Origin: Guillardia theta CCMP2712
Lineage: Eukaryota; Protista; Cryptophyta
Direction: 5' to 3'
DNA: 64,000 nucleotides
Assembly: GCF_000315625.1 (NCBI RefSeq)
Contig: NW_005434658.1
Location: 108,535 to 172,534, forward strand
Within the stretch, counting starts at the first letter, position 1; the number at the start of each line of letters is the position of its first letter. Both the position numbers and the translations under genes were made by a program. The notes beneath the pieces were generated by a model. That model saw only the letters and a list, made by a program, of their open reading frames with translations, did no database searches and was not told the DNA's origin. This document shows positions 3,350-55,492 of this stretch, piece after piece.

Positions 3350-3406
<57 letters not shown>

Positions 3407-3432
3407 GTGATTATGATGATGATGATTATGAA

Positions 3433-3477
<45 letters not shown>

Positions 3478-5817: not shown

Positions 5818-6405
5818 CTACTTCTTCTTCTTCTTGTCGGGCTTGGTCAGGTCCTTGAGGATCTTGGCTTCGTTCTGAAAGACCAACAAACAGTCAGGAG
5901 CGCGAGATCTCGAGACGACCGTTGAACAAATAATCCCTCACCTTGACTTCACCGGTGATTGTCTTCATATCAGCCATCGCTTCCTGGACCTGCATCTGTT
6001 GTCACCGACGACATCGGCCAGCCTCTCGCGCGACGTTACCTCCTCCTCCTCGACCTTAGGATCAAAAGTCAAGGTCTTCTTCACAGTATCGTCCTTGCTG
6101 TCCTTGAAGGTGGCAAACGCAACCTGTCGTTGGATGACAATCAGGTGCTCGCGGATCCTCCTCCTTCATCTCCCTCCCACCTTGATGGCACGGTCGTCGG
6201 CGTTCTCCATACCAGGGCCGAGGGTGAGCTTCTGAGATCTGACGCTCTTCAAGATTCCTCTCTGCTTGTTGGTGAGAGGAACGTTCAAAAGCTCCTCCGA
6301 GTTGTCGCTGGACTGATTTGTAACCACGAATGCCAAAGTGCAGACTGCGAGCAGGATGACGGAGACGGCAGCTGCGATTTGCTGCCAGATAAACATCAGT
6401 GACAT
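5818..6405 (-). CDS. Small hypothetical protein with N-terminal hydrophobic anchor and Lys-rich C-terminus (about 4 exons)
   Basis: QQIAAAVSVILLAVCTLAFVV hydrophobic stretch; short GT-AG introns join ..DDRAIK / VAFATFKDSKDDTVKKTLTFDPKVEEE / VQEAMADMKTITGEVK / NEAKILKDLTKPDKKKKK*. Start codon uncertain. Confidence 0.6.
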
Positions 6406-7977
6406 CCAAGACGTGGTTCAGTTTAGTCCGGAGGAGATGACGGGATCGTACAAAACACATGCATAATGAATAAGCAAGACTGAATATCTAGGTTCTCCGC
6501 CTTGATTCATCAAGGACATCGGTGATATGTGGAGAAGTCTAACTGAAGACAATGTTGTGATCTGGTGCATTTCACATCTTACTGAGTGATGAAAGATAAT
6601 ACATGTTGAGATATCAAAGCTTCTAGTCTAGCTGAGGACGATAGGGCAAAAATGGAAGGCGCACAGTGAATGCTCAACTCCAGCTGTGCACTCGAGCTCA
6701 ATCCCTTACCGTTTCCTCTTCCTTCCCTTACATCTCACTCGCGCTCCTCATAAATCGCTGTCATCGTCCCCTCTGCCTACATCATCTTTCTCCCCCGCGC
6801 ATGTTCTCTTATTCCCGGGTGAGCTCCACCTCTCAGTGAATCATCATCAACATCGGCAGAGTTTGTCACAAAGGCAGCACTTCTATCTTCCCACAATCGC
6901 GATCACTCGCTGCATACCTTGCCGGAGCGAGCATTGCGCTCAACAGGTCGAACGAGGCTCTCAGTCAGCAGCATGGCAGTAGGTGGCGGTATCGTAGGGC
7001 CTTTGCCCGAAATAGAACAAGATAAACGGTGGGGTAGGGTCCTAGCCAACTTCACTGCCATCGAAAATATTCATTTTCTTTATTTGAAATTTAACTTTAG
7101 AATTCTAGCATGCCTGAATATAAAGCTGCCCAAGTACCTTCCGGTCCTCAAACGAAGTTGGCTCTAGGCTAGTACTGGAGGGTTCCGAGCCAAGTTTACT
7201 CAGCGGCACCCCGGTGATCGGACCCGGGCCCGGGTGTGACGGCCGGGCGCCGCCAGGCCTGCCCCCGGCCAGTGACTCGACTCTATGATGCCCGGCGGCG
7301 GGAGTCGCCTTTGCCTCCGGGGCAAACTTACTAATGATTGATAAGGGCCTTATACTTGTCACCGAGTCCTGCTCGGACCCTCAAAGAAGCGCGCGCCGGT
7401 AGAGGAAATCTTGTGACTCGGAAGTAGAGGCACGTTCATCATCGGACTTGGAAGCGCGCGTAGAGGAAATAAGCAGACTCGGGCACCGTTCATGACTCGT
7501 ACTGATTTTCAATTTACCTTCGAGTCACGTCGGAACTTACGGGAAGAGCATCTCAGTCATGACTCACAGAGTCAGTGACAGTGAGTCCGACGGACCGTCG
7601 GTCACTTTCAAGTGGCATGACTGATGGAAACACTGAAAAAACTGCCCGGCCCGATCGAATCCTAAGGTGACCCCCAGACGACCCGGCGTCAGGCTCCGGC
7701 GCCGGAGCCCAGGCGCTGCAGGCTTTGCCCACAGTCCCACGCCTTGAGGCAGTGATCCGGCGGACGCTGTCACGAGACGGTCGAAGTTGCACTGCACGTT
7801 CGCAACTTGACAGACCGAGTTACTCAAACTGAACTTGGAAACTGAAACTTTCACTGGCGAAATGGCGCCAGTCGAGAGATCGTCGTGTTAAGGTCCCAAA
7901 GTCCAGCCTGATCGCATGAGGAAGCCCAACGGCTCCTGAACTGTGACTATACTCGGAGACTGAGTAGCTCGCAGCCG

Positions 7978-10036
7978 TCACAGAGATCCGAAAGCAGAGG
8001 AGGAGCCTGATGGCAGGTCAGCCCGGCTCCGACGACTGTTGATGGATGACGAGGTTTCAAGGACTTGCCGTACCTGGCTGAAAGATTCTTGACTTAGCCT
8101 TGGGTTTGGCTGCCGCTGTACTCTCACTGGTTGTGCTCTGGGAAGGAGAATCAACCAGTGAGATGGAGGAGGAGGAGAAGGAGAGGAGGGGCAGGAGGAG
8201 GAGGCGCAGGAGGGGCAAGAGGGGCAGGAGGAGGAGGAGGTCGAAGAGGAGGACGAAGAGCAGGAGCAGGGGGAGGACGAGGAGGAGGAGGAGGAGGAGG
8301 AGGACGAAGTGGTGGAGGAGGGAGGGGGAGGAGGGGGAGGAGGAGGAGCCCCGTGCCTGTCTCTCTTCCTTGGCCAACTCGATGCTTGTCTTGCAGCGGA
8401 TACCCGCCAAGGAAGAACTACACGAGCGCAAGTCAACATTGCACCTGAGAAGCCTGCACGATCAAACCTGAAGCGAGATTTTGTTCGTGTACTGGCGCTC
8501 TCTGCAGTCGTCGGTCAGAGCCGGTGAATCGCATGTAAGACGGACTCACTTGGCACGTTGGAGTCTTCCGCCACAGCAGACATCATCTGCTCTTGGTCAA
8601 GGATCTCGTTCATGAGCTGAAAGAAAGTCACCACTCCCCTCACAGGCTTGTCCCGACTTCCACGACCTGGGCACGAGCCTTGATGTCTAAATTCGTCTTG
8701 TCCAGAAGTTGTAGCCCTGAAACGTGTCAGCCTTCACCGCATAACCTCCACTCTCTTCACCAGCCATCGCTTTCTTCAGGATCGTGCAGATCGCTGGGTC
8801 GGTGTTCTGCGGAGCCTACAGGTGTATGTCAAACTTGTGGTTGAAAACGAGCAAAACACAACATCGCTTAACGGTGTCCGGCCATCAACATTCTTGTGGA
8901 AAGGATCAGCTCCATTGCGGAGGAGCAGCTCGACCATGTTGACTTGTTTCTGCCAGTGGAAACAAAAACTCAGAAATCGCTGTAAAGAAAGGATACAATC
9001 CCATTACCGACGAGATGATTGCATAGTGCAAGGCCGAGTCAGAGCTTGTGTTTTGCAAGGCAACGGATTCTGAGCCCAGCTCAGAACGAGCACCAGAGGG
9101 TATGAACTTCACCTGGATTCTTCTTGAGTAGCAGCTCTGCAACTCTAATGTGGTTCTGCATGTGCATTAGTGTCGTCTACCCTGAAGTCCCTCCGGTGTT
9201 GCCTCTTGTACAGCGCACATCAATGGCGTCAATCCGTCGAAATTTCGACAGATCGTCGATGCTCCTGAATGGTTAAAGATCTTTCATCACATAAACGACC
9301 ACAACTTTGCTTTCTCGAGATCTCTCACCGCAATCTTCAATCAGAAATTTGGTGATTTCCACATGCCCTTCACCACAGGCATAGTGCAGCGGATAATATC
9401 TTTCATTTCGCCCACAATCAGCAGACTGCAGGCGAACACTTGAAGAAACAATTTGAAGAGTACCCTTGAGCATCGCGGACTTCTATGTCGCTCTTGGACG
9501 CAACGAGCAACTGCCAATCGTAAACCTCTACTCTTACTACACCTACAGTCTACCTTCAGGACTTCCATCTTGTTTGCAAGAGAGGCAAGATGGATGGGGA
9601 GGTCCTATCAAGCAGCGTGAGTCGCTCAGTCTCTCGATCACAACCTAGGACCTTGTTCTCATTGCCCATGGCGATGTCCGCCTTATGCTCCAGCAGCAAC
9701 TTGGCCACTTCTGTCCGCCCCCTGCGAGAGCATGTATCCCAGCGAAAGCAACAGCAAACGGATCGAAGACCTGTAAGCTGCTAGATGCAATGCTGTATTG
9801 CAACCATCGTCCCTGCGAAGAACAACTCAACCCTCATCAACTCCCTTGTTATCATCCCTCTGAAACCATGCATCCCACTTCCATCCCACCGGTATCACCA
9901 CAGCATTCATCCAGCCCTCGCTTGCGCTCTCTCCTATGACATACTTGAAGTTCACGGAGCAGGAAGCTTCGAGGGCTCTCCTGGCTGCCTCCACGTTCCC
10001 GGCCTCGGCAGCCTGCAGCAGCGCTTTCCCCGACAT
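7978..10036 (-). CDS. Ankyrin-repeat protein, multi-exon
   Basis: LLQAAEAGNVEAARRAL; NTALHLAAY / GRTEVAKLLLEHKADI; HLASLANKMEVLK; YPLHYACGEGHVEITKFLI; DGLTPLMCAV; MVELLLRNGADPFHKNVDGRT. 3' end approximate. Confidence 0.85.
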
Positions 10037-10955
10037 GACTGGCGCCGCAATGGAGGGATCCGCGGAAGTTGGTAGAACCGATATGGCCGTTATGACCGTT
10101 TCATCGAAACCGTCACCCGGTGGCCTGACACAGTGACTCGGACCGTGCCGCCGCCGCCATGCCGGGCCACGGATCATGATCGGCGCCGCGCCGGATAACA
10201 GTGATTGAACGGCAGCGGCGTCACAACTGTCAGGAGGCTCGGCGCTCACCGTACGGTACGCGCCCGCCGGGCGGCCCGGGCCGGGCCGCCGGGCCCGGGG
10301 CGCCGCGGCCGCGGAGGCCGGCCCGCCACTGGGCCCACCGTGGCTGGAAGGCCCGGGCCCCGGCCGGGTGACTCACTGCGGCGACTCGGAAGGACCTGAC
10401 TGTCAGTCGGAGGCTCGGATCATCGCCGCGGTCACCGGGTGGCCCGGGGGCGGTCAGCGGGCCGTCGGAGTACGGTACCAGTACCCGGTACTCCGCCGGC
10501 GCGCCGTCGGGTCGCACCGAGTCTCAGACGGTACGGTACGGTAAAGCGGCGAGGGGGCCGGCGCGCCTGGCGGCGGGCCGCGGACCGTCACTAAAAACTT
10601 TGGCTTCCCCTACTCTCCGAGTGATTGTCCTCGCCGGTACCGTCACTGATTTTCAACTTAACGGACTCCGGGAAGTTTGAGTAACTTTCAAAGAAGTAGT
10701 AAGGCGTCAGTTGCCATGTTAAGCCCAGCCTCTCCCTTCAAGTCCGGGCCGCTGGTAAGTTGAAGGCTGCATGACAGCGGATAAGTTGCGCGAGGAATCA
10801 ACTTGAAAAAAGAAAATCTTAATCGTCAGGTTTCTGCAGAGCACTGTACCTATTTTACTACATCGGACATGTATTTTTTTTGAAGATAACCGACGAGACC
10901 GCCTTATAAGTCAGTGCGCAACAGAAGTTTCTCTCACCATCACAACGAACGCAGC

Positions 10956-11480
10956 ATGCTCGCAAGCTACGATCTCTGCTCCTGCGATGACGACTGTCTG
11001 GTGTGCTCCATGACCCGGACTTTCTCGCCTCCCGTCCCTCCCCCTCCTACCCAGCGCCCAAAGAAGTCCGACAAGTGGACCCAAGACAGGAAGCAGCGCC
11101 ACAAGCTCTCCTGCAGGAACAAGAGCAGGCTCAGCCTCCAGGACAAGATGGACATCGTGTCGCTCTTCTACAGCACGATGCCGTCGTCGTCGACGCAGGT
11201 GGTCACGCAGAGCTCCATCGCCAAGATGTACGGGAAGAGCCGCTCCGCCATCTGCAAGGTCCTCAAGTCGAAGCAGGTTGAGGCCTTGCTCCGCAAGGTG
11301 GTCATGGCCGGGCAGGGGCTGCCTGCTGGGGTCATGGGGAGAGAGCGATGGTCAGAGGCTGAGGCCTTGCGGGAGGCGGAGATGCCAAGGGTGAAGAAGG
11401 AGGAGGGGGCGGAGGAGTCTACTACACGGGCTTACACGGAGGCGTATGAGCTTTGCGACAGCGGGAGGAGCGATTTGTAG
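10956..11480 (+). CDS. 174-aa intronless CENP-B N-terminal/psq-type helix-turn-helix protein, copy 1
   Basis: RNKSRLSLQDKMDIV..TQSSIAKMYGKSRSAICKVLK resembles the CENP-B/Tigger N-terminal HTH pattern (RxxLSLxxKxxII..xxIAxxYGxxxSxIxxIxK). N-terminal CxCxxxCxxC cluster; no DDE domain. Confidence 0.75.
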   Translation: MLASYDLCSCDDDCLVCSMTRTFSPPVPPPPTQRPKKSDKWTQDRKQRHKLSCRNKSRLSLQDKMDIVSLFYSTMPSSSTQVVTQSSIAKMYGKSRSAICKVLKSKQVEALLRKVVMAGQGLPAGVMGRERWSEAEALREAEMPRVKKEEGAEESTTRAYTEAYELCDSGRSDL

Positions 11481-12656
11481 GGCTACATGGGGGAATGTAG
11501 ATGAGAGTGAGGGGCTGTAGGGCGAGTAGGGAGGAGGAGGAAGCGAAGAGGATGAGCGAGTAGAGGGAAGGAGAGCGTGTACATGTATACGCGTGTTTGT
11601 AATTAAAAGCATGTTGTCTGTGAAGGTTGAGAAACAATATGACGAGCCGGGGAGAGATACCATGCTGAATGCATAGGGTTGGATGGTTTGGATACGAGGC
11701 TTGTGAGTTAAATGAGCTTTAGTCGTGGTCTAGGTGGGATGGGACTTGCCTGCTTGGATCAGATGGCATGAAGGAATTGAGTGAAACTTGGAATTGTGGA
11801 GCACAGAGGACATTAAAGGAAGGTCATGCAGAAATGATATAAGTCGCATGTAAATGATAATGATGAGGGGGCATGTCAATTGAATGTCAAGGGCTCGGCA
11901 TCGTAAGGACTGGGGATGAGTCAAGTTTTTGCGTCTTCCTTTCCTCGTGAAAAATTCAGGTGAAGAACAGGAGGAAACGAAATATCCATTCATCGATGGT
12001 AATGGACAACTCATTGATAAATGAGATGAGGGTCACCAAGTTGTAATGTGAACATCGTATCTCCAAGACACGAAACAGGAATTTGCCAACTAGACACTCG
12101 TTCACTTGTCTTCTGTATTCAGATACAGCTTATCGCTTACAAGTCAAAACAAATAAATTTATCGGGGATGCTAATAAGGCTTGATACCAGGCACGCCGGG
12201 TGGTCTGGTCGACTCAGATGGTGGGCAGAAGAGGAGAACGAGGAAGAGAGCCTGCGAGGATGAGCGAGTAGGAGGAGGGGGGCGGGAGGGGGGCAAGGAA
12301 GGTACGGCTGCTGGGGAAGGAATGCGAATTTTGGACTTTTTTACCACCAAGAGTTATCAACTTTACTACCTAACTTTGACCATTTCTTTTTTTGTTGACC
12401 AAGGGCAAGTCAAATCTCAGGTTGCTCTTTCAAAATCTCAAATATCCCGAGCAAACTTCAAATTACCTTGGCTCAGGTTCGAGGAACGGTTTGGGCCTCA
12501 AGTTTCTTTTTTGAAGTTGACGGGCAAGCATTTTAAGTGTTTCCTTTTAAAGTTTTATTTTGATCCTGAGATACCACTTATCGATACTGTACCTCTTGCC
12601 CCCCCCTTTATATCAGTGCACGATGGAATTCTCGTACCATCACAACCGCGATCAAC

Positions 12657-13181
12657 ATGAGCACATGCGCCAACTGTGGCTCCTGCGATGACGACTGTCT
12701 GGTGTGCTCCATGGCCCGGACTTTCTCGCCTCCCGTCCCTCCCCCTCCTACCCAGCGCCCAAAGAAGTCCGACAAGTGGACCCAAGACAGGAAGCAGCGC
12801 CACAAGCTCTCCTGCAGGAACAAGAGCAGGCTCAGCCTCCAGGACAAGATGGACATCGTGTCGCTCTTCTACAGCACGATGCCGTCGTCGTCGACGCAGG
12901 TGGTCACGCAGAGCTCCATCGCCAAGATGTACGGGAAGAGCCGCTCCGCCATCTGCAAGGTCCTCAAGTCGAAGCAGGTTGAGGCCTTGCTCCGCAAGGT
13001 GGTCATGGCCGGGCAGGGGCTGCCTGCTGGGGTCATGGGGAGAGAGCGATGGTCGGAGGCTGAGGCCTTGCGGGAGGCGGAGATGCCAAGGGTGAAGAAG
13101 GAGGAGGGGGCGGAGGAGTCTACTACACGGGCTTACACGGAGGCGTATGAGCTTTGCGACAGCGGGAGGAGCGATTTGTAG
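12657..13181 (+). CDS. 174-aa CENP-B/psq-type HTH protein, copy 2
   Basis: Same as copy 1 from codon 9 onward except 2 nt; the N-terminus is MSTCANCG instead of MLASYDLC. Confidence 0.75.
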   Translation: MSTCANCGSCDDDCLVCSMARTFSPPVPPPPTQRPKKSDKWTQDRKQRHKLSCRNKSRLSLQDKMDIVSLFYSTMPSSSTQVVTQSSIAKMYGKSRSAICKVLKSKQVEALLRKVVMAGQGLPAGVMGRERWSEAEALREAEMPRVKKEEGAEESTTRAYTEAYELCDSGRSDL

Positions 13182-13664
13182 GGCTACATGGGGGAATGTA
13201 GATGAGAGTGAGGGGCTGTAGGGCGAGTAGGGAGGAGGAGGAAGCGAAGAGGATGAGCGAGTAGAGGGAAGGAGAGCGTGTACATGTATACGCGTGTTTG
13301 TAATACAAGTAGTGAGGAGTGAGAAACTAAGTGATTCAGTAAATTGCTCGTGTTTGTTGATTTTATAAAATGCTGGTATAGAATGGGTGAGACTAGAGGT
13401 GAATCAAGATGTTCACGCAATTCTACTTGTGCCAAGCATCTCACGACACAAAAAAAGTTTCAGCAGTCATCAGCCGTCTCTAGCTTTGTTTGACAATGAA
13501 TTTGCTTCATCGCATCTATACAGCTTGTGTGTGGCCGAGCTGTAAGTCCAAGGAAATCAGAGATAAAGGAAATCAAGGAAATCATTATGCGACATAATTT
13601 ATCTATCAACATTCATGATTTGCTCAACTTCGCCGAGCATACAATACAATGATTGAAGATTTTG

Positions 13665-13966
13665 CCTCATCACCAGCTTTCTACCTGCTTCGAACTTGCA
13701 TCTTGGCGATGGAGCTCTTTGTTTGATGATCCCTTTTTCAGCATTTCATCAATCTCTGTGTCGTTGAGGTAGAGGCCGTTGTAGTTGCCGTGCTCCCACG
13801 CATTATATCAGTATCAGGCAACATACACTATATTATGTCAAGTAATGTTAAAAGATCATGTGTTTTGTGCTAAAGCGGATACGACGGCATCGAAGAGCGA
13901 CACGATGTCCATCTTGTCCTGGAGGCTGAGCCTGCTCTTGTTCCTGCAGGAGAGCTTGTGGCGCAC
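13665..13966 (-). pseudogene. Fragmented, inverted third copy of the HTH gene
   Basis: 13894-13964 is the reverse complement of the segment encoding RHKLSCRNKSRLSLQDKMDIVSLF. 13683-13718 retains gagctccatcgccaagatg and cgaagcaggt with internal deletions; unrelated sequence lies between the pieces. Confidence 0.75.
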
Positions 13967-14139
13967 CTTCCTGTATTCCTTTATTGACTGAAAAAGATTA
14001 AAGGCACTGTCTTGGGTGACCGATCCCCAACTTCCGCTGACGCGGCTTCGGAGGGATCCGGCGGGTCACACTACTTCGGCCTCTTATGGGACCCCTGGTA
14101 AAGTTTCGGCCTCCTATGCGGGCCCGTAAACTTCAGTGA

Positions 14140-15650
14140 AACTCAGTTTACAGGAAGGGAATGGTAACTTAGTAAAGCACTTTTAGACTGAGAGAGAGTC
14201 ACGCCCGGGTCAGTCGGAGGGTAATAAAAGCCGGACTGAGTAAATTGATAGTCGGTGCCTAATAAAAGCCGGACTGAGTAAATTGATAGTCGGTGCCAGT
14301 CAATTTAGGCTCAGTCCGGCTTTTATTACCCTCCGACTGACCCGGGCGTGACTCGAGAGTCTCTCAGTAAATTGACGCGACGACTGGCAGTGAGTAACCG
14401 AAGTTACTAAAACTAACTTGATGTGCCGTCACGTCGTCGGACCGGACGGTCCGGCGAGTCCGCGGCGAGCCCGGCGACGGTCACTGACGCGGCCCGACTC
14501 GGCGACGCCCGGCCGGGCCAGGGCGAGCGGCAGCGGCCCGGGGCCGGGCCTCGGGGCCGCTGGCACGGTCCGATCCGAGCCGCCGCGGCACTGAGTACGG
14601 TCCGAGTAGTGTAGTACGGCGGGTCACTGCAGTGCGGTCAGACTCTCAGGCTCCCGGCGACTGAGCAGCGCGGCCTGGCAGACTGAGAGTGACCGTCACG
14701 GGGCCGATCCGACCGATGGTCGGATCGGACGGTTCACCGAGCCTGACTCTCCGAGTGAGCCGCCCTGATTCCGTACCGGGTGACGGACGGACCGTCGGAC
14801 CGTCCCGGGTACTGCGCGGCCGCCGCGATGATCATCGGATTCTGATTCTGGGGCGGCGTACCGTTCCGTACGGTAATGGTTGGCCGCCGCCGTGCGGCGG
14901 CCCGGGCAGCAGTGCCAGTCGGACTGACCGACCGTACGGTACCCGGTTGTACCCGCCGGCCGCCGGGCTGGCCCTCATCGGACCGGGGTGAGTCTCAGTG
15001 CCGCCAAGGGCCTTCAACCGGGTCCCCCGACAGTCGCCGACCAGTGACTAATTCAATCCGATCAGTGACTCGGCGCCGACTCCCGTGACTCTCAGCAGTC
15101 GTCGGAGGTCCGAGCCTGGGCCGACTCAGAGTCCCAGTTGTGATCGGATCGGACAGTCGGACGGCACCGTGCCGCCCGGGCCGCCGGGCCCAGCCAAACT
15201 GTGGCTGGCTTGAAACTTCAAGTTGGCAGTCCGACTGCCCTGAAGTTCATACGGCCGGCCCGGTTCGGGCGGCGGCATCATCGCCGGGCCGCCGCGGCCG
15301 CCCGGATATTTAGCCGCATCAATGATGAACTTCGGAAAGTTCTGGCACCCGGTGACCGGTCCGGGCCCGGGCCGACGGTCACTGGGCGGGAACTTCCGAG
15401 TTCGGAACTAAGTTCCGGGGACCGTGCCCGCCTCAACGGGCGCGACCGTGCAGTACGAGGCGCCGCGGCCGCCGGGCCGCCGGGCCCGGCCCGAGGCCCG
15501 GCCGGGCGGCACTGAGCGGAGCGGCGGGGCGGGGCCGCACCGGCTTCTCGGAACTCCCGGAAGTTCCGAAGTTCCGAAGTCCCCGGGCACTGGCGGCAAC
15601 TACTACCGACTAATCGGCCGTTGATCCCGGTTAATAACGCAAGTTTCCAA
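14140..15650. promoter_or_regulatory. GC/CpG-rich, palindrome-dense intergenic island; the largest of seven (others ~7160-7870, 10110-10800, 52240-52920, 54110-54790, 59085-59350, 63210-63870)
   Basis: No credible ORF; dense GAGTC/GACTC, CAGTG, GTAC, CCGG and AACTT/AAGTT words and short hairpins. Each island lies upstream of at least one gene. Regulatory role is inferred from position. Confidence 0.55.
14196..14354. repeat. Perfect 45-bp inverted repeat (14196-14240 / 14310-14354) overlapping a perfect 38-bp tandem duplication (14222-14259 / 14260-14297)
   Basis: gagtcacgcccgggtcagtcggagggtaataaaagccggactgag and its exact reverse complement, checked base by base. Confidence 0.95.
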
Positions 15651-16863
15651 CTGCCGTGTCCACCCCCACCCCTGCTAGGCAAGTTGGGTGTTCGGGCCTA
15701 CCCCCACCCCATGATAGTGTCCGATCTTCATGCGGATATCGGACCCCCAGGCTGGTAACAGGCTACCCCCCGGGTACACCACTCCGGCCTTGGGTCCCTC
15801 AGGCCTGAACTGACCTTGGCAACTGACCCCCAGGGTCTGCCCCATAAGCAGCGAAATGGACCCGGTCGTTGCGGGATGAGATGCATTCGATCTTGGCTTG
15901 GCCTGGACAAACCAATGGCGTGAGTATACCCCCTACGATTTCTCGATTACCCTTCTAATTGAAATCTGCCTACATCTGTACCCCAGTCACGGTGCGAAGG
16001 GCTACAAACATATAGGCAAGTTTGCTACCCCACCCACTGATTTGGCTCACAACCCCCACCCTTTGACCTCTCTTTAGCCACTTCCGGGAGGTAGGTCCTC
16101 CAGGCACTACCCTCTAACAACCTCATTCAACCACCCTACCCCCTCCCTTCTTCGTTCACCCGCTGAGCCATGCAGGAACCCCCGCCCCTCCACCCTGCCG
16201 AGAAGTTCATCAGAAGTAGATGATATGCTGTCTGTTCTCTCCCTTCCCCGCTTACTTGACATGCTTTCTCATTCATTGAGATCCTTGATAGATGTTCCTT
16301 GGCTCCCTGCCTCCACTTGGCTCAGGGACCGACTGAACGCTTCATTGATGGAGTGTGGTTTACCTGGAACAGTGCAGCTGTGTCGGAATACATCTGTTTT
16401 TAAGTGATTCTATTCCAGAGTTACCATGATGTTGGTATCAAGAGGTCACAGATGTGTTAAACAGTAGGTAGGCGTGCGAGGTGGAACACTTCCGTTAGTA
16501 CCTGAGTCTCCGTGCAAGTGGATGAGGGTGGTGATTTAGTGCAAGCCAAGTCATCTCCTTGTATCAGACCCTCTCTGAGATGGTTTCCTTCAGATTCTGA
16601 AGGCTGTTTGTAAGACCGTCCTGGACCATTGAGCGCTAGAGGATGTCTTTCCCGACTTTCAACAACGGGTCAGCATGACCGTGGGATGCGATGCGAGTCA
16701 ACTGAGCCTGGGGGATGGCAGGAACATTGCGAATGAGACCATGGTCGAAGACTATGTTCAGTCTCATCTTGCAGGGAATTATGTTTTCAAGCGTGGGAAG
16801 AATGGTCACAGGGAAACGTTGAGCTGCTTTGATAAAACCAAGCCGGTTTGCCCCGCCGTTGAG

Positions 16864-18078
16864 ATGAGCATGCAGTCATCTTTCAATCGCAGATCAATCC
16901 GACAAAGCGAGCAGGAGGGCATGGCCCAGCACGGGTGGGAAAATGCCTTCTCCCATCCTCCAACCTTGATCCTTGCGCTTGCGCAGGTCCCAGACCCGTC
17001 GGTCGATCCTCACTACAACAACGCCACTGCCAAGTTCTCCTTCACCACCAAAGTGAACGGACCAGACAGCTACCAGAAGGCGCGGAGTCCCGTCCATGAG
17101 GTGCTGATCTCTCGAGCTGGTGACGCTCTCCGTTGACCTTCTGCTCCCAGGACTCACCGGGGGGAGCCTGCACTAGCCTGGCCATCGGCAAGAAAGAGCT
17201 GAAGCCTATCACCCCTCCAGTAGGCCTCCAGCAGGATTTTGTCTCTGTTTCTAGTCTCACGCTCTTCCTCGCAGATCTCGGGCGCTTTCAAAGTGAGAGA
17301 TAATCCTCCAAACTCAGAGTTCCGACGATTCTACGAGAGAGGAGACCTGCCCATCGCTATAGAACACCGGGGGGTTGGAAATCGAATCCAGTAAGATTGC
17401 ACTGACCTTGATGCAAGCGTTGAAGTAGTGTTGTTCAGGTGGAAGATCGACATAGAAAAGCTTGATTATCATCACTACCTCCCGATCTTCTTTGATGGCC
17501 TTCGAGAAAAAGAAGAGCCTTATCGTTTCTTGGCCGTGCAGGGCACGTTTGACATGCTTGAGGTAAGTTTGAATGCTCCATGTTCCTCAGAGGCTGATGT
17601 CGTTGGCAACCAAGCACGGAGGCACAAAGATCTTACCTGTCATCCCTCAACTCATCATCCCCATCAAGACCGCCTTGAACACGCGGGAGCCAGGAGTAAT
17701 TGTCATCGTGTTGAAGGTTTTACAGCAGCTCGTGGTGTCGGGAGAGATGATAGGAGAGGCGCTGGTGCCATACTATCGTCAGATCCTCCCCGTTCTTAAC
17801 ATCTTCAAGAACAGAAATGTGAATGTGAGTGCTATGTAGCACCCGACGGCACCTGATCGAGAGCTGTGCAGGTTGGTGACTGTATAGTATACAACCAGCG
17901 GAAAAGGATGATCCTCGGAGATCTCATACAAGAGACGCTGGAACTGCTTGAGACGTGATAGTGTCCTTCTCATCTCGAACTTAGCTCAACTGACATGCAC
18001 GCCAGGCATGGAGGCGAAGATGCTTTCATCAACATCAAGTACATGATTCCTACATATGAGAGCTGCGTTCTCAACTAG
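16864..18078 (+). CDS. PACRG: Parkin co-regulated gene protein (axonemal inner-junction protein)
   Basis: [16 protein letters not shown] / [32 protein letters not shown] / [43 protein letters not shown] / [13 protein letters not shown] / [23 protein letters not shown]. Start approximate. Confidence 0.97.
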
Positions 18079-18129: not shown

Positions 18130-21100
18130 CATCTTTATTCATCCAACGTGTTCTTCCACATTCATGCCATCGTCGTTCGTCATTCGCGGATTCCTTTCAT
18201 CTGTCAGGCCTCTTGCGTTGCTGGCATGGTTGCGCTATTCGCGAATCGATTGACCTGGATCGTTTACCTGACATTTCTCATGGCAGCACATGAAGAGAAG
18301 AACAATGAAGGCGACGATGTACAGCAGCAAAGCATCCATGCCGCAATTCTCTTGCGCTGTTGTGCAACTTGCCACCATGTTGCGCTCAAAGTGAAGTGAC
18401 GGTTGCTCCAGGAAGGACTGACTTGCAAGAATGAGCCCTGAGCTCTTGTAACACGATTTGATGCACTTGTCTCCTGCCGTCTCCTCTTCCTCCTTCTTTT
18501 CTGCTTTTCTATCTCTCCCTCCTTCCCTCCTTCCTTGCTCCACTCTCAGCTTGCTCCTTGTAGCTCCTTCGACGAGCCCTCAGACGTTTACCTCTCCTCC
18601 GACGCTCCCCCTCTTCCTCCTCCTCCTCGGGTCTCCCATGCGCCTCCATCGCCTGTCATACCCTTTGCCGCTCCCTTCATCCCTGCCATGGCGGCCCTAT
18701 CGCACAACCGCCGGGCTGATAGGGGATGAGGGCGGGTGGGCTCCGAAGTACTTGAAGTTTTACTCACCGTCGGTCATGATGGCCGGGCGCCCGGGAATGA
18801 AGTGACTAGCTACTACTTGTAGCTAGTAGTGGTAGATGATGAGATGATGGAGATGTTGAGATGATTGAGATGATGAGATGATGGAGATGATGAGATGATG
18901 GAGATGATGAGATGATGGAGATGTTGAGATGATGGAGATGTTGAGATGATGGAGATGTTGAGATGATGGAGATGATGAGATGATGGAGATGATGAGATGA
19001 TAGAGATGATGAGATGATGGAGATGTTGAGATGATGGAGATGTCGCAGTGGCAGGATGTTGAGGTTCTACTGGCAACTCAGGAGAACATCGGGGTTTGAC
19101 GTGTACATTAAAAACAAATAAATGGTTGACAGACATGGTGGCCGGGCAACAAAGTTCCTCTAAGTGAGCACTGGCATGTGATGAACGGTTTTAGCTTTTG
19201 ACCGCTATTCTGCTCTGCTCTGCTCTGCTCTGCTTTCCCAACTCCTCTCCTCTCCTCCCCTCCCCTCCCCTCCCCTCTTCTCTCCTCTTTTTTCTCCTCT
19301 CCTCTCCTCTTTTCTCTCCTCTCCTCTCCTCATCTCTTCTCTCACACTTTCTCCTCTGCTCGTCTCCTCTCGTCATGAGCTCTGCTGTGATGTCACAAGA
19401 TCTTGATGTTGTCTTGGAGCACTCCGAGGAGGAGCAGCCGATCTTTGACCTTAACAACTGATCAGCAATAGCCGGGAGGGAGCACGAGCGAGAGAACCGT
19501 AAGACACATCTCTGTGTTCCCACAGAGGACCGCTACTGTGCGCGCGGGTTCTGCGAGCTCCTCTGGGACACAGAAGTCCTGACAATTCAAAGGATATGAG
19601 CAGCAGGAGCAGGAGCAGCATCGTCAAAGGAGGTCAGGAGGAGGAGGAGCAACTTAAAGATGTATGGGGAGGAGCAAGAGAAGGGATGTCAGCAACTTTA
19701 CCTCCAGTCTTGTCCCTCTGTCCTTAGAGGGAAGTCGGATGACGACGCCGCTCTCTTCCCACCTCCTCATCCATCCCTGCAACGTCTCGCTTGCTGTGGG
19801 AGGGTATGTCAGAGTATGATGTCAGATCTCAGAGTATGATATCACGTTTGACATTTGCAAGGTCTGCTACTTCTCACCTTGTCCTGTTACGCTGAAGAAA
19901 ATTTTGGGGCTACAAGAGGTCCAGGAGCAACTTTCTATACAGGATTTGATAGGAGCGATGCCTGCCCTGAAGGTGTAGCAAGGTGAGAGAAGAACAAGAG
20001 TAGTGAGAGGAGGAGAAAAACAAGAGTAGTAAGCGGAGAAGAACAAGAGCAGTGAGAGGAAAAAGATACCACGAATGAGAGGAGGAGAGAAATGACGAGA
20101 AGGGAAGTATCACGGATATCCTAGACTCACCCGGAGGCAAAGAAACAAAGTGTCGAAGACTTGTCAAGCATTTCCTCCACCTGACAATGGTTTACTGCCA
20201 TCGCTTCTTCTCCATGCCCTGTCACATTGAACCCTTCTCCCAGTGGCGACGAGATCCAGCAATTGGTACCCTGCGTGGGACGCTGAGCATAACCGAGGAG
20301 AGAGGGGAGGAGAAAAGTGAGAGGAAGAGGAAGAGGAAGAGGAGGAAGAGAAAAGGAAGAGGAAGAAGAGGAAGAAGAGGCAGGTTGATGACGGCATCAG
20401 GACGTAAAGGAGAAGGCAGGTGCTTAGGATGGAAGGAGAAGGGGGAGGGAGGGAGGGAGGAGGAGGAGGAGGAGGAAGATGAGGATGAGGAGGGCGAGGT
20501 AGGGCGTTACCTGCTGTGCCTTTGACAGCAGCGCGGAGGTTGACATCTCGTGCTTGTTGGCAGTCGAGACGAGGAACTCAAAGGAGTCAGCAGAGGCTGC
20601 AGGGGAGCTGGCAATGGCGAGAAAGATTGTTTCCCGGTCCTCCTCTACCTCCCTCCTCATCTGAAGCTTCACATGCTGGCCCGGGGCCTGAGACTCCTTT
20701 CAAACAAGGAGGTGGAGGAAGAGGAAGAAACAGAGACGAGAGGAGGGGCTGACAGCAAGAGGAAGCAGGCAGAGCGTACTGGTGAGTGCGACAGGGCTGA
20801 AACGAGGTGGAGGGGAAGTGAAGAAAGGAGCAGGCGGAAATGGAAGAGAAGGAGAGGCAAGCAGAGCGTAAGAGAGGAGGGGATCAAGGAAAATTTGTAG
20901 AGGATGGTAGGGTATAAGAGCGTAGGAGAAGGTAAGAGAGTGGCGGGGGAGGGCCGAGAAAGGGGGAGGAGAGGGGGAGGGAGGGGAGGAGAGAAGGACC
21001 AGATACCTTGTGCTGTTGTGCGAGGCTGGGGGGTACCTTGAGGATGACCCGGTGGAGGGACTGGTTCACTTGCTCCACCAGTACGGCTGTCGCCTCCTGC

Positions 21101-23172
21101 ATGTCGCCCGACTTGGCCTGCAGGTGAGTGAGCTGAAGATCTTACCCGAGTTGAGGAGCTACGAGAGGAAACGTCTCGATGACCTGTTGCACAGGCAGCA
21201 GCTTCTGTGACCTCTGAGCACCGGGAGGAGACGCGTGCTCCTGCTCCGAGCTGCCTCGCTCCATCGTCGTCGTGTGTTTCGCATCCTCGTCCGAGGAGGT
21301 CGGGCTCGCGCTCCTCCTCTTTTTCTTCTCCTTCCTCACGTTCCTCTGGATGGACTCCACAAGCCGGATCATGTGCTTGTGCTGCCTTGCGTGGTCCTTG
21401 GTGTAGATGTCGAAGTAGTGGACGTCAGGCCGCGTCCTCTGAGCTGCCAGGAGGGTGTCAGGGGTCGAGGACCTCGTTATCCTCTTCTTCTCCTTGAGCC
21501 GCAGCTTCTCCCCCCGCCCGTCAGTCATCCAGGGCATCTCCTGGATGGAGGAGACGAACTGTCTGCTGTCAATCGTCCTGGACGAGCCCCGGGACCAGGA
21601 GGAGTCCAGCAGAGATCGGACCCCGTGATCAGCATCGATCCTCAGGCCTGCCAGCTGCTCCCCGTCTCGCCTCTCCTCCCCGTTCTCTTCCCGCGGCGAA
21701 GCGACGAGCGAGGTTCTCCCCGTCCTTGCCAGCTGATCCTCGATCGACTTCTTAGACGCGCTTACCCGGCATCGAGGTGGGAGAGGACGGGGAAACAAGG
21801 GATCCTGCAGCAAGTTTCAGCTCTGAGGGACCTCATGTAGGGAGTGAGGGGCAAGTTCAGAGTTTGAGGAGCGGTACGATGTCGCAAAGAATAAGTCACA
21901 GCAGAACGAGAGGAGAGGAGGAGGGAGAAGAGAACGAGAAAGTTGCAGTGGGAATAAACGACAAGGAGAGTAAAAGGGTTGAGAAGGAGTGAGGGAGGGC
22001 GAAAGGGGGCGGGGGGCGGGGGGCGTTCGGAAGGAAATGGGGAATGGAAGGAGGGAGAGGGACAGAGAGTCGAGTCTTAGGGGATGAGAATGACGGAGGA
22101 TGAAAACGATCATCAGCAACCATAGACAACATGTGCCAATAAACAAGATGGAGGAAGGCATGGCGGGTGGGGTTACCTTTCTAGGAAGTGAAACATCGTC
22201 AGCAGATCGGACCATCGTCCTCGACAAATTCTCCATCTGCTTCAAGTACACTTCTTCCGCCTCTGAGCTATCCTTCGTTGCAGGATGCTCGTCTCTGATA
22301 ATCGTCCTCCTCCCTTCTCTCTTGGGGTACGTCTGAGAATGAGGGTGGAAATATCGCGCAGGAGATGCATTGGCAGAGTTCAACCCCCTACAAAGATCGA
22401 GTTCTCAGTACCTCCCTCCCTTCGCCCCCCCTTTCCTTCTCTATTCCTTCCCCCCTCCACCTCCCTACCTCTGTTCTCTCTTCCTCTCTCCCTCACTCTG
22501 TCCCTTCCCCCTCCTCTCTCCTCGCTCCCCCCTTCCCTCCCCGCTTCCCCTGCTGCTCTTTTTCCTTCCATATCCTCTTACCCCTGCTCTTCCCTACCTT
22601 GACATGTTTTCACTCATCGGCGACAACCCTCTGCTTTGACTCTCGGCAGGGCTCTCGAAGCTGACAGAAAGGAAGCTCGAGCCCAGCCTCTGATCCGCCG
22701 ACCCCTGGGCGATCGAGAAGGAGTCTGCCTTGATGTCTGGAAATACCTCAACTCTGTTCCTGCTGTCTTCCAGGTGCTGCTGCCTGTTGTCGAACAACTT
22801 TTGCATCAGCAGTGTGTTGCTTTTCCTCACGTCCCTGTACTCGAACAGGCTTGACTTCCAGTACGGAGCCTCGTCTCTCTCCTCCTCTTCTTTTCTCCTC
22901 CTCGTCGACCTCCTCACCGTTTGTCCTGGACTGTGTTGAGGAGAGGCCAGAGGTGGGGATCGGTCCTGCGCAGCTGCTGCTCCACGACTCCAGGAGACCC
23001 TCAAGATATTCGGAGTTAGCGTCCTCACCTTCACATCCTCTTCTCCTCCTCTCTGCTCCGCACGAAGTGCTCTCTTCGTGCTGACAGTGGATGCCTTGGA
23101 AGTGTCCAGCTGCTGCCTTGCAGCTGAGCCCAGCTCCCTCATCTCGATGTGCACCAGGTGGACCCCCTCCAT
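18130..23172 (-). CDS. Long multi-exon hypothetical protein, no domain recognised (may be more than one gene)
   Basis: Long complex minus-strand ORF segments (22594-23172, 21142-21813, 22180-22383) bounded by splice-like signals and simple-repeat introns. 3' end poorly defined. Confidence 0.5.
18835..19042. repeat. GAGATGATG/GAGATGTT-based minisatellite, probably intronic
   Basis: Visible tandem 8-9-mer variants. Confidence 0.9.
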
Positions 23173-23941
23173 CGTCGGAGCGAGGAGAAGAGCTGAGAAA
23201 ATGAACTTATCAGATATCGCCTGTAGACTACCCGCACTGGGCTGGAAAGGGACGAAAATTCTACAGGGAGGGGAGGAAGTTTAGGTCAGGGCAGATGGGC
23301 GGGGAATGTGTGAATGGCAGAGACTGGGCGTGAGGGGAGTAAAAGTGGGGGAAGGGAATGAAAGGAAGATGTGGAATTGAGAACAACAGTCAAAGAAGTG
23401 GAGTGAAAGGTTGAGAATGTGTGAAGATACGCCTGCTCTGTGAGTGATCGACAAAGGAAGTTGTTGAGCAAATCAAAACAGAGAAGTCAACAAATCGTCA
23501 AGATTCATTCGCAGAAAGCACAAGAATGGTGTGCTCGAGAATGAAAGGGATTGAAGCAAGAATGGCAGACACGTATCGGAAGGCGGAGTACAGGCAGGAA
23601 GTACAAAGAGAAAACGAAGGGGAAATAGCAATAATGATGGTGCAGGGAGTAGAAGGATCGAAAGCAGATGTGGGAAGCGTCGTAGCGGAAGCAAATTCGC
23701 AAGAGTAGGAAGAGGAGCAGAAGGAGGAGAAGGAGTGGGGGAGGAGGAGTGGAAGGAGTGGAAGGAGTGGAAGAAAGGGAGGGAGTGGCAAAAGGCGGAG
23801 AAGGAGGAGGATGTGAAATTGAAGAAGAGGAGTGGGAGTAGGAAGAGGAGGAGGAGGAGAAGCAGTAGGAGGAAGAGGAGAAGCAGCAGTAGTAGTAGTA
23901 AGTGGAGAAGCAGTAGGAGGAGCAGAAGGAGGAGGAGCAGG

Positions 23942-23973
<32 letters not shown>

Positions 23974-24868
23974 TAGTAGTAGGAGTAGGAGGAGAATATG
24001 GATCTTGTTGTATCAGGTTCATCATTTTCTCTCTCTCTGGCCTTTTTTTTCCTGCCGCTCTTGTCAATATTTTTTTTCCCATCGTCAACTTTTTCAAAAT
24101 ATTTTAGATCTCATTTAAAATCTAAAAGAAGAGAGGAAAAATATTTTAAACCGAGACATCTCGCCAACTTTACATTTGTTCCGCTACCAGGCAATCGATT
24201 ACTACCAAGTTTACATCACCAAAATGTTGAAAATATTTTGAACAGTAATAAAGAAAGTTAAAATTAGTGAACAAAAATCTGGCTGGACACGCTCGAAACA
24301 AACCTTGGTACAAATATAGATATATTTAAATTGATTTCTTTTTTATTCCGGCATGGATGCTGCTTTCGTACGCGGCATCCACAGAGGAGCATGACGGAGG
24401 GGGAGGGAGGGAGGGAGGGAGAGAGGGAGAGAGGGAGAGGGAAGGAGGGGGAGAGAGAGGGGAGGGAAGGAGGAAGGGATGGAGGGGCAAAGAGAGGGAG
24501 GGGGGAGGTGAGCGAGTTGAGTATTTGAGGGAGGGAGGGAGGGGAGGGGAGGGGAGGGGAGGGAGGGGCAGAACGTTTGCTGTGGTTGGAGCAGGCACGT
24601 GATCAAAGGGATGAGATTGCAGATCAAGAAGCATAGATGATAATTTTCAACGCGATCATTAACGCGCATACGTAGGTGGACAGCAACCCAAGAATGGCGA
24701 ACTGTTTCTTTGAAGACTTACTGATGGTCTGGGAAGCAAAGCTGCATATCTCAATCTAGACAGGATTTGTATCATTTTTTTCAGAAGCCCGTGATCCTTG
24801 TTCCTCGCATTGGACAAGTTGAGGAAGTTGAGGGGGAAGGACAATCAGCATAGGAAAGACGAGCAACC

Positions 24869-30682
<5,814 letters not shown>

Positions 30683-30955: not shown

Positions 30956-35029
<4,074 letters not shown>

Positions 35030-42392: not shown

Positions 42393-42442
<50 letters not shown>

Positions 42443-44794: not shown

Positions 44795-44827
<33 letters not shown>

Positions 44828-54971: not shown

Positions 54972-55492
54972 TCAAGTTTCAACTATCTTGTCAGATACTA
55001 TTCTACAAAGAAGGATACGGACAGGGGCTGCCATGCTGTCTGTCATAGACATCATGAGCTTGATATCATCATCCTCTTCTACCATGATGCAGCTTCCATC
55101 ATCCTGCTCCTCCTCTCCTGTGCACTCACGGGTGCTGCATCTATCCTGCAGTCGCATGTTGTGAGCGCCCCGCATGCTGTACCCATTCTGGATAAGGTGA
55201 AACCCTGCCTTCAGTGCTTTTTTGCCGTTGCATCCCTCGAGGCTTTCTCCCTCGCTGCCTTCACTGCTCTCAGCACCATCGCTCCTCCTGCACTCTCCTC
55301 CCTCGGGCTTGACTCTCCTCCCGGCTCCCCGCCGGTGAGGGAGGAGGCGGCCTCGGCTTCCTCGCGGCGACGCCCTCGCGTCGCCTTGACTCTCCGATGC
55401 AGGCGAGACACGGTGGAGCTCTTGCATGACCATGTCGGCTTGGAGGCGATGCTGATGCTACGACGAGCGGGGGGCTGGAGGGGGGTCTGCAT
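54972..55492 (-). CDS. Hypothetical protein, tandem paralogue A
   Basis: 153-aa ORF (54972-55433) overlapping the 338-bp duplicated block; true reading frame uncertain. Confidence 0.35.

Follow-up and report, generated by a model that had tools for sequence, protein, structure and literature searches.

The GC-rich islands found in nuclear DNA of Guillardia theta CCMP2712 are mosaics of short perfect odd palindromes and micro-tandems, and are neither sets of binding sites nor copies of an element. The feature common to them is a complementarity rule, not a word list: the palindromes are centred on G or C, and are visible as complementarity between bases at distance 2. This unifying rule was missing from the original prediction, which had described the islands by their shared vocabulary, and had offered either a promoter grammar or the footprint of a local mutational process as explanation. 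A copying error, made while DNA is repaired or replicated, fits the pattern better than ordinary gene switches do. In our leading, tentative reading, the islands may well form a class of CpG-rich GC islands specific to the lineage, with lengths of 0.3-1.5 kb, located 5' of some G. theta genes and built by pivot-base copying.

Islands in the window

The window analyzed is a stretch of 64,000 nt of scaffold JH992980.1. Its gene map is made up of GenBank gene calls, retrieved via exact-protein look-ups. The seven non-coding islands predicted are all present, and vary in length from 266 to 1511 bp.

Island 1, 7160-7870: tandem intergenic region, upstream of the (-) strand gene 5818-6976; GC 0.584, CpG o/e 1.02, leave-one-out hexamer LLR +0.70, distance-2 complement o/e 1.42
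Island 2, 10110-10800: divergent pair, Ank (-, start 10036) and 174-aa gene (+, start 10956); GC 0.682, CpG o/e 1.13, LLR +1.54, distance-2 o/e 1.49
Island 3 (focal), 14140-15650: tandem intergenic region, with the ParcG mRNA start 0.5-2 kb downstream; GC 0.657, CpG o/e 1.18, distance-2 o/e 1.64
Island 4, 52240-52920: about 1 kb upstream of the (-) strand prolyl oligopeptidase gene, annotated start 51278; GC 0.643, CpG o/e 1.21, LLR +1.17, distance-2 o/e 1.50
Island 5, 54110-54790: without adjoining annotated gene; GC 0.627, CpG o/e 1.08, LLR +1.35, distance-2 o/e 1.49
Island 6 (small), 59085-59350: divergent pair, trypsin (-, start 58851) and 247-aa gene (+, start 59835); GC 0.609, LLR +1.19, distance-2 o/e 1.48
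Island 7, 63210-63870: upstream of the (-) strand PRMT6-like gene, start 62842; GC 0.592, CpG o/e 1.01, LLR +0.94, distance-2 o/e 1.41

When six islands are used for training, a hexamer model is able to recognize the seventh, detects three further islands within 15.5 kb outside the window, and also transfers to another scaffold. The GC content of the seven islands is 0.58-0.68, and their CpG o/e varies from 0.89 to 1.21, the value for the window being 0.70. All seven have the size and composition of CpG islands (at least 200 bp, GC at least 50%, CpG o/e at least 0.6). The window value of 0.70 may hint at a methylated, CpG-depleted background. Their composition is strand-symmetric, with a GC skew of about 0. 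No RNA family was detected in the window by Rfam at gathering thresholds, and no account of such islands was found in the searchable literature on G. theta.

Shared words and lack of homology

Most of the words ascribed to the islands are indeed enriched. AACTT/AAGTT was found 45 times against 4.5 expected (about 10x); CAGTG, GTGAC and GAGTC are about five times more frequent than in the rest of the window; CCCGGG was found 20 times in the islands and 8 times in the remaining window, which holds eleven times more DNA, and CCGTACGG 5 times in the islands and never in the rest of the window. The exception is GATCGGATC, which is weak, with one copy per strand. GTAC and GATC are enriched 1.9x and 1.5x, respectively, and ACGT is depleted five-fold. 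Since only ACGT, of these three words, obeys the palindrome rule, some words may be selected.

The excess of GTAC, GATC and AACTT, as that of TAC-S-GTA (see below), goes beyond the palindrome rule, and is in favour of a selected regulatory grammar, according to which the islands are activating or boundary regions carrying dyad sites with a central C or G for dimeric proteins, and are CpG-rich through being unmethylated. bZIP proteins, for example, prefer the dyad-symmetric TGA-S-TCA sequence, with a central C or G. The CpG o/e, about 1.1 in the islands and 0.70 in the window, fits this interpretation, which we nonetheless consider unlikely on the evidence given in the following sections.

The islands do not align with one another, as had been noticed by eye. 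The longest match found by blastn-short among islands is 21 nt, no 36-nt window at 81% identity or more was found in an ungapped scan, pure G/C runs excepted, and the sharing between islands is explained by an order-5 model. A perfect fold-back resides at the focal-island edge, and encloses a perfect 38-bp tandem duplication at 14222-14297 (period 38, 2.0 copies, 100% matches).

14196-14354: fold-back at the focal-island edge, perfect 45-bp inverted repeat, 14196-14240 and 14310-14354

Both the fold-back and the length of the island-bearing intergenic regions (0.9-6.3 kb) would suit degraded relics, or nested insertions, of a small promoter-targeting mobile element, be it a MITE, a fold-back or a palindromic insert resembling GC clusters. 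Yet the islands have at most 21 nt in common, copies that align and have common termini did not emerge from the island-versus-island comparison, and the order-5 model accounts for what is shared. In addition, no second copy of the fold-back was found in the 100 kb of G. theta DNA examined, and no transposase or other domain was detected by Pfam in the ORFs beside islands 4 and 5 or in the 174-aa genes. A mobile origin is largely refuted for the window, and is very improbable. The 38-bp duplication within the 45-bp inverted repeat, as the perfect micro-tandems described below, suggests recent events.

Odd palindromes and distance-2 complementarity

An odd palindrome is made up by an arm, a single central base and the reverse-complement arm, and about one is found every 14 bp in the islands. 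Odd palindromes with loop 1 and arms of at least 3 bases number 517, against 147 in dinucleotide shuffles; Markov expectations for the same count are 248±16 (order 2) and 423±21 (order 5). The enrichment over shuffles climbs from 3.5x to 12.9x with arm length, with no preferred length or mode. Even palindromes in the islands are not above the order-2 model. Odd palindromes of at least 7 nt take in 44% of island bases, and 131 of them reside in the focal island. One with 10-bp arms is centred at 10280 in island 2, and overlapping palindromes with 7-bp arms are centred at 59330 and 59335 in island 6.

The central base is C or G in 81% of the island palindromes, against 65% in base composition. 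Correspondingly, A-S-T and T-S-A trimers (S = C or G) are found at 2.4-2.5x, and TAC-S-GTA is overused 2.5x. The arms are generic: 58 of the 64 3-mers are used, usage correlates with background frequency (Spearman 0.82), and arm entropy is 5.16 bits, against 5.69 in the background. Stretches of up to 1.5 kb with a palindrome every 14 bp, and with arms tracking the background, are unlike what a few regulatory factors would leave. Neither the restricted half-site repertoire nor the fixed site length of dimeric transcription factor clusters was found, no palindrome length being favoured, and the choice between C and G at the centre shows no strand or orientation bias relative to gene direction. 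The palindrome density, the generic arms, the lack of a favoured length and the unbiased centre all argue against a regulatory grammar.

Base complementarity exceeds expectation at distances 2, 4 and 6 (o/e 1.52, 1.30 and 1.11, respectively), and is about 1.0 at odd distances. The profile holds in 10 of 10 islands, the seven in the window and the three outside. The distance-2 o/e is 1.50±0.14 inside islands and 0.86 outside; in windows outside islands with GC of at least 0.60 the mean is 0.81 and the maximum 1.10. The statistic is a simple, alignment-free, genome-wide detector of such islands.

That chance, or misassembly of GC-rich sequence, produced the pattern is hardly credible. The assembly is a draft with gaps, and short-read contigs break inside and beside the focal island. 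Yet z values reach 12-17 against shuffles and Markov models, the signal is absent from GC-matched non-island DNA, and the model is transferable to unseen sequence, another scaffold included. Contigs from a DNA run, which may be the assembly's own source, span 14325-15666 without differences; 13779-14325 is almost without cover.

Hairpins, tandems and local repeats

Perfect hairpins (stem of at least 6, loop of at most 12) have a density of 17.3 per kb in the islands, against 2.5 per kb in the remaining window. They are 4-7 times more abundant than in each island's own dinucleotide shuffles (z 3.6 to 12.6), except in island 54110-54790, which is weak at loops of at most 8 (z 1.6), its long stems having loops of 9-10. 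In the focal island there are 44, where its shuffles have 6.4 (z 12.6). For both hairpins and odd palindromes, the density surmised by eye is thus well above that of shuffled DNA. The stems at 14704-14728 and 54327-54365, and the three micro-tandems reported earlier, were also recovered, the latter by TRF.

14704-14728: perfect hairpin, 11-bp stem, 3-nt loop, focal island
54327-54365: perfect hairpin, 15-bp stem, island 5
54368-54399: perfect hairpin, 11-bp stem, island 5
63321-63359: perfect hairpin, 16-bp stem, island 7
10528-10543: micro-tandem (ACGGT)x3.2, island 2
52851-52877: micro-tandem (GAACTTCG)x3.4, island 4
15560-15580: micro-tandem (GAAGTTCC)x2.6, focal island

The 15560-15580 segment is the exact reverse complement of 52853-52873, forming a 21-nt inverted match between islands 3 and 4. 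Repeated 9-mers are also abundant. Direct repeats number 47 at less than 20 bp (8.3 expected from the order-5 model) and 34 at 20-40 bp (6.4 expected), inverted repeats 20 at 20-40 bp (5.8 expected). Direct and inverted repeats exceed the order-5 vocabulary model only at distances under about 40-80 bp, the excess being a statistical one.

Long perfect stems of 11, 15 and 16 bp, the 45-bp inverted repeat and the strand-symmetric composition without GC skew could also denote structural DNA, i.e. cruciform- or hairpin-prone regions which exclude nucleosomes, or act as origins or recombination hotspots, GC-rich via biased gene conversion, with palindromes as a by-product of break repair. Break hotspots lie promoter-side in many eukaryotes, as the islands do, and the notion of a repair by-product overlaps our preferred explanation. 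Most palindromes, however, have arms of 3-6 bp around one base, and are unable to extrude stable hairpins. We regard a structural role as improbable.

Position relative to genes

Each island had been placed 5' of at least one gene. According to GenBank calls this is correct for five; for 52240-52920 it holds only at a distance of about 1 kb, from the prolyl oligopeptidase start codon, and 54110-54790 has no adjoining annotated gene. Islands were found in 7 of 12 intergenic regions containing a gene 5' end, and in 0 of 4 convergent regions. The distribution would suit a regulatory grammar as well, although the 5' restriction has a p of only about 0.07 by the Fisher test. On the other hand, 5 of the 12 regions with a 5' end carry no island, DNA from 15650 to 52240 is island-free throughout, and islands are missing at the divergent promoters in 39961-44395 and 69557-70185. 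Close paralogues also differ, gene g4 having an island and g5 none, and the g5 orthologue of a relative is likewise devoid of it. The inverted duplicate of another gene, g11, is identical only as far as the 5' end of the gene.

A close relative of G. theta, represented by a syntenic metagenome contig which stops just short of the focal island, differs from it by ordinary indels in the neighbouring non-island DNA covered by the comparison. A copying process would therefore have to be limited to islands.

The islands precede the probable proximal promoter, and steady-state RNA does not cover the focal one, in which it was tested. RNA depth in the focal island is about zero in three RNA or RNA-like runs, with about 0.5 at 15355-15748 in one of them. 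The region downstream features:

15662-16178, (+): ACCCC/TACCCC motif zone, separating the focal island from the ParcG mRNA start
16144-18078, (+): ParcG-domain gene, CDS 16643-18078 (annotation), RNA contigs from about 16144-16184

The ParcG gene has introns of 47-55 nt with GT-AG ends, and is highly expressed, as judged from RNA contigs, a point in favour of a regulatory role of the island upstream. However, its mRNA start at about 16144, the only mRNA 5' end mapped, lies about 0.5 kb past the end of the island, which consequently does not overlap the start site. All 13 ACCCC/TACCCC copies are on the strand of the ParcG gene, and a mirror of the zone, made up by seven GGGGT at 58924-59048, is found upstream of the (-) strand trypsin gene. 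The ACCCC/TACCCC zone is probably the proximal promoter, outside the palindromic core. Because 5 of 12 5' regions are island-free, g4 and g5 differ, and the ParcG start is outside an RNA-free island, promoter grammar is weakened as a general or necessary explanation.

A possible origin by pivot-base copying

Of the two alternatives originally put forward, a local mutational process is favoured, because palindrome arms are generic, enrichment rises with arm length, repeats are local, and simulation matches the islands. The labile presence of islands, as seen in g4 and g5, and the lack of alignments beyond 21 nt among them also speak for it. A recurrent local copying error, in repair or replication, would build and maintain the islands. 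The growing strand would turn back past one unpaired pivot base and copy a few bases just made, or the displaced identical strand, the outcome being a short inverted copy adjoining its template; slippage-type direct copies would arise alongside the inverted ones. GC-rich self-complementary sequence would be the best primer of copying events, and the process may thus feed itself, leading to discrete islands which converge on a common vocabulary without common ancestry. Both the mechanism and its self-reinforcement are what we infer from the anatomy of the islands, and a link to open chromatin or break hotspots is conceivable. Break repair is known to involve templated synthesis by snap-back and loop-out, primed by 1-4 nt within 10-25 bp (PMC5728401). 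It is a possible, still doubtful, extension that self-reinforcing template switching at a single C/G pivot is active in G. theta, perhaps in cryptophytes generally, and gives rise to new palindrome islands of kilobase size, promoter-side of genes.

In a toy pivot-reflection simulation, distance-2 and distance-4 values were 1.33-1.38 and 1.25-1.29 (1.50 and 1.29 in the islands), and palindromes per kb numbered 70-82 (odd) and 27-35 (even), against 71 and 26-33 in the islands. Sequences simulated from random seeds scored +0.66 to +0.86 with the hexamer model, random sequence +0.06, and real islands +1.6. Only about half of the vocabulary signal is gained, distance-2 complementarity is below that of the islands, and the C/G centre preference is not predicted by the simple pivot model. 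The hexamer score of real islands, twice that of simulated ones, is in line with a regulatory grammar. Even-pivot and 3-nt-loop simulations gave the wrong complementarity profile.

If mutational footprints, the islands record single-base-pivot template switching, which would be frequent within defined chromatin contexts and produce new promoter-proximal DNA without transposons, which bears on the origin of non-coding sequence and of regions similar to CpG islands. A single C/G-pivot process, if true, would be a sequence-generating mechanism so far undescribed in any nuclear genome. A regulatory code based on generic dyad symmetry, rather than on specific words, would also be unusual. Histone ChIP profiling of G. 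theta has been reported (preprint 10.1101/2025.03.17.643675), and these data, along with public RNA-seq, bring promoter and chromatin questions within direct test.

Comparison with known systems

Yeast mitochondrial GC clusters and bacterial REP elements feature family consensus sequences and defined lengths. As the islands, they are GC-rich palindromic intergenic sequences recurring in a genome; the G. theta islands differ in being nuclear and in having no alignable common sequence. In quasipalindrome template-switch mutagenesis (Ripley model), switching inside inverted repeats yields more perfect palindromes. The long perfect stems, whose loops measure 3-10 nt, would be explained in this way, but the process corrects palindromes that are already there, and generates no dense arrays of new 7-13-nt odd palindromes.

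Templated insertions in break repair (SD-MMEJ/TMEJ) are copies made within about 10-25 bp from 1-4-nt primers, and the excess of island repeats under 40-80 bp may be a counterpart of them. Their footprints, however, are single scars at induced breaks, whereas the G. theta pattern saturates kilobase regions, and neither the single-base pivot nor the preference for C/G centres is reported for them. The loops of the snap-back hairpins documented so far comprise several bases, and a pivot of one base is no established outcome.

The G. theta islands resemble vertebrate promoter CpG islands in being discrete stretches of 0.3-1.5 kb, in their elevated GC, in a CpG o/e which is not depleted (about 1.1, the DNA around having 0.70), and in being located 5' of a subset of genes, divergent pairs included. 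Unlike CpG islands, the G. theta focal island excludes the mapped ParcG start by about 0.5 kb, so that the start site need not be contained in an island, and the islands have no GC skew. To our knowledge, the distance-2 complementarity rule has not been described for CpG islands. The G. theta islands are made of G/C-centred odd palindromes obeying this rule.

Islands as a sequence class

The seven GC-rich, palindrome-dense, non-coding islands (islands 1–7: 7160–7870, 10110–10800, 14140–15650, 52240–52920, 54110–54790, 59085–59350 and 63210–63870) have a GC content of 0.58–0.68, and a CpG observed/expected ratio of 0.89–1.21, vs. 0.70 for the whole window. Perfect hairpins (stem at least 6, loop up to 12) number 17.3 per kb in islands vs. 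2.5 per kb in the remaining window, and are 4–7 fold above the dinucleotide shuffles of each island, which bears out the palindrome density of the original prediction; every stem and micro-tandem it named was located in the sequence. As also anticipated, islands do not align to each other, the longest inter-island match being 21 nt. The words said to be common to islands are enriched over both a first-order model and the rest of the window, with the exception of GATCGGATC, which is marginal.

In a leave-one-out hexamer model (six islands train, the seventh is tested) held-out islands scored between +0.7 and +1.5 bits per hexamer; bins outside islands averaged −1.39 and reached 0.32 at most. 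Islands are thus a real class, and none was missed within the window. Three more islands (islands 8–10, about 65300–65850, 67100–67600 and 77500–78350) were found by the model in 15.5 kb of unseen sequence past the window end, and two small ones, about 8900–9500 and 11700–12200, on another G. theta scaffold (L005). A full-text literature search, with the genome paper outside its coverage, found such islands described neither for G. theta nor for any other cryptophyte.

Odd palindromes and shared vocabulary

Palindromes were sorted by true loop size and compared with shuffles. Only odd palindromes, in which one centre base separates an arm from its reverse complement, stand out: 517 with arms of at least 3 were observed vs. 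147 in shuffles, 76 vs. 11.7 with arms of at least 5, 30 vs. 3.4 with arms of at least 6. Loops of 0 and 2–9 (arms at least 3) range from 1.1 to 1.6 times the shuffles. The 517 odd palindromes exceed order-2 (248), order-3 (238) and order-5 (423) Markov models as well; even palindromes show no excess over the order-2 model. Odd palindromes of at least 7 nt recur about once every 14 bp and take in 44% of island bases. C or G occupies 81% of their centres, vs. 65% in base composition, with no strand bias between C and G centres. Of the 64 possible 3-mer arms, 58 are in use, roughly tracking background frequency.

The 10–12-mers common to islands are far above first- and third-order models, and are matched by a pooled fifth-order model, which places the vocabulary at the 5–7-nt scale. 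Of the 25 pentamers with the strongest enrichment, 13 are odd palindromes X-Y-S-Y'-X' (S = C or G; e.g., AASTT, ACSGT, TCSGA, CCSGG, GTSAC, CASTG, GASTC, CTSAG), a class including merely 16 of 512 canonical pentamers, and the top-enriched trimers are the four X-S-X' classes (ACT/AGT 2.5x, TCA/TGA 2.4x, CCG/CGG 1.55x, GCC/GGC 1.5x). In all ten islands complementarity exceeds expectation between bases 2 apart (d2, 1.52x) and 4 apart (d4, 1.30x), and is as expected by chance at distances 1, 3 and 5. The d4 signal is not a by-product of the distance-2 rule, since the rule alone gives identity at distance 4. Per 300-bp window, d2 is 1.50±0.14 in islands vs. 0.86±0.13 outside; non-island windows with GC of at least 0.60 average 0.81, none above 1.10. 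At 29940–30130 a pentanucleotide microsatellite, (TGTCC)n including G/C variants, gives a false high d2 (1.44), but its d4 is low (0.61).

The rule foretells the sign of deviation of 14 of 16 even tetramer palindromes, CCGG, GGCC, AATT and TTAA being raised, ACGT (0.2x), TCGA, AGCT, TATA and others lowered; GTAC and GATC break it. As GTAC, GATC, AACTT and TAC-S-GTA are commoner than the rule accounts for, and ACGT is markedly underused, some of the words are possibly under selection.

Position relative to genes

GenBank gene calls in the window, and genes of the extension to coordinate 79557 obtained through the overlapping locus L003, are listed.

GenBank gene calls
2722–5426, minus, BCCT
5818–6976, minus, g2
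8515–10036, minus, Ank
10956–11480, plus, g4
12657–13181, plus, g5
16643–18078, plus, ParcG
19393–23172, minus, g7
ends at 39961, minus, Kelch/ACBP
44395–45982, plus, kinase
47919–51278, minus, prolyl oligopeptidase
56671–58851, minus, trypsin
59835–61141, plus, g9
61784–62842, minus, PRMT
L003 extension
69114–69557, minus, g11
70185–72368, plus, g12
73161–75378, minus, Na/Ca exchanger
starts 79556, plus, metallophosphatase

The closest foreign match of the PRMT6-like ORF (61784–63313, minus) is in the cryptophyte Hanusia phi (66% identity); exact-protein look-ups assign the window to G. theta CCMP2712 scaffold JH992980.1 (assembly GCA_000315625.1), coordinates about 108535–172534, and a second protein is recorded as GUITHDRAFT_67323.

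The flanks are known for 16 intergenic regions. Islands reside in seven of the 12 containing at least one gene 5' end (three divergent, four tandem) and in none of the four convergent ones (Fisher's exact p about 0.07), a restriction that is suggestive only. The notion that each island is 5' of a gene is largely borne out by the gene calls, and is unproven for island 5; islands 5 and 8 have no annotated neighbour. Five 5'-end regions lack an island (upstream of g1, g5 and g7, Kelch-kinase, and g11-g12, the last having a weak signal only), and none is found between 15650 and 52240. Island 9 lies a short way upstream of an inverted copy of g11 (147 aa) that is not annotated. The copy (L003:11260–11728, extended 67830–68298, vs. 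68961–69449) has its 5' end toward the island, and consists of two near-identical blocks with a divergent, intron-like segment between them.

The tandem paralogues g4 and g5, 174-aa genes of unknown function, are 96% identical over 702 bp (10904–11603 vs. 12608–13304), only about 50 bp upstream being duplicated; g4 has island 2, g5 has none. An inverted 105-bp fragment of the 174-aa gene lies beside the focal island (island 3) at 13881–13977, and scaffold JH993003.1 (L005) carries a pair of such paralogues. A 2319-bp contig from ENA metagenome ERZ930071 (L006), from a close relative of G. theta, corresponds to 11411–13645 and is syntenic through intergenic DNA at about 77–83% nucleotide identity. 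It has no island upstream of the g5 orthologue, and ends just before the focal island. Indels in this non-island DNA adjoining islands are ordinary; a 124-bp segment is inverted in place (L006 821–942 vs. 12412–12535).

The focal island and ParcG

RNA depth over 14140–15650 is essentially zero in three RNA or RNA-like runs, one reaching ~0.5 at 15355–15748. ParcG is very highly expressed, its RNA contigs starting at about 16144–16184, roughly 0.5 kb past the island end; the mRNA carries a ~500-nt 5' UTR (16144–16643) and ten very short introns (47–55 nt), and no spliced-leader sequence was found at the contig end. The first of three strand-pure clusters occupies the stretch from the island to the mRNA start.

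ACCCC/TACCCC clusters
15662–16178, plus, 13 copies, all on the gene strand
58924–59048, minus, 7 copies, mirror arrangement just upstream of the trypsin start codon
35331–35544, plus, 7 copies, no GC island adjoining

ACCCC/TACCCC is likely an oriented proximal-promoter motif of a subset of genes. The zone looks like a proximal promoter; the island is a separate upstream module devoid of orientation.

Short-range copies

Compared with the fifth-order model, direct 9-mer repeats are in excess at <20 bp (47 vs. 8.3 expected) and 20–40 bp (34 vs. 6.4), inverted ones at 20–40 bp (20 vs. 5.8). The excess is confined to short range, counts beyond about 160 bp equalling the model. Perfect micro-tandems (5–8-nt units), perfect 11–16-bp stems, and a perfect 38-bp duplication nested in a perfect 45-bp inverted repeat look like recent events. 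DNA-run contigs leave 13779–14325, the region of the 45-bp repeat, almost uncovered, and have loose ends inside the focal island (15342, 15465, 15562) continuing into dissimilar sequence; graph breaks caused by repeats, or structural variants, could explain this.

Two other kinds of repeats were noticed. Purine-rich low-complexity repeats cross-matching within the window (3698–4170, 33968–34154, 23800–24000, 42340–42500, others) are probably coding or microsatellite-like, and unrelated to islands. The unannotated stretch between island 5 and trypsin hosts a 338-bp direct duplication (55226–55563 and 56191–56528, 99.4% identity); ORFs spanning it have no Pfam match.

Possible origin of islands

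Most odd palindromes, having arms of 3–6 bp and one centre base, cannot form stable hairpins. This, the generic arms and the smooth rise with arm length argue against both structure-forming elements and sites for a few factors. The pattern fits a copying process, in which synthesis would turn back after one pivot base and write the reverse complement of the preceding bases alongside. In a toy model, random GC-rich seeds underwent insertion, after a pivot base, of the reverse complement of the preceding 2–8 bases, along with tandem duplication, deletion and point mutation.

Pivot model compared with real islands
d2: model 1.33–1.38; islands 1.50
d4: model 1.25–1.29; islands 1.29
d1 and d3: model about 1.0; islands about 1.0
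odd palindromes per kb: model 70–82; islands 71
even palindromes per kb: model 27–35; islands 26–33
real-island hexamer score: model +0.66 to +0.86; islands +1.6 out of sample

Composition-matched random sequence scored +0.06 under the hexamer model. The simulated profile came out wrong when the turn-back was blunt (even) or left a loop of 3 nt. The pivot results indicate that islands can converge on a common vocabulary with no homology between them; in simulation pivot copying appears enough to yield island statistics, which shows sufficiency and is not proof. Speculatively, the single-base pivot and the C/G centres might reflect repair centred on lesions in C:G pairs, or switching to the displaced strand with the junction base skipped. 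GC-rich self-complementary sequence would prime preferentially, making the process self-reinforcing and islands discrete.

Alternative end joining features snap-back and loop-out templated synthesis from primers of 1–4 nt, within 10–25 bp (PMC5728401). Although the single-base pivot and the preference for C/G centres are not explained by it, this synthesis is the nearest documented chemistry to the copying proposed for islands.
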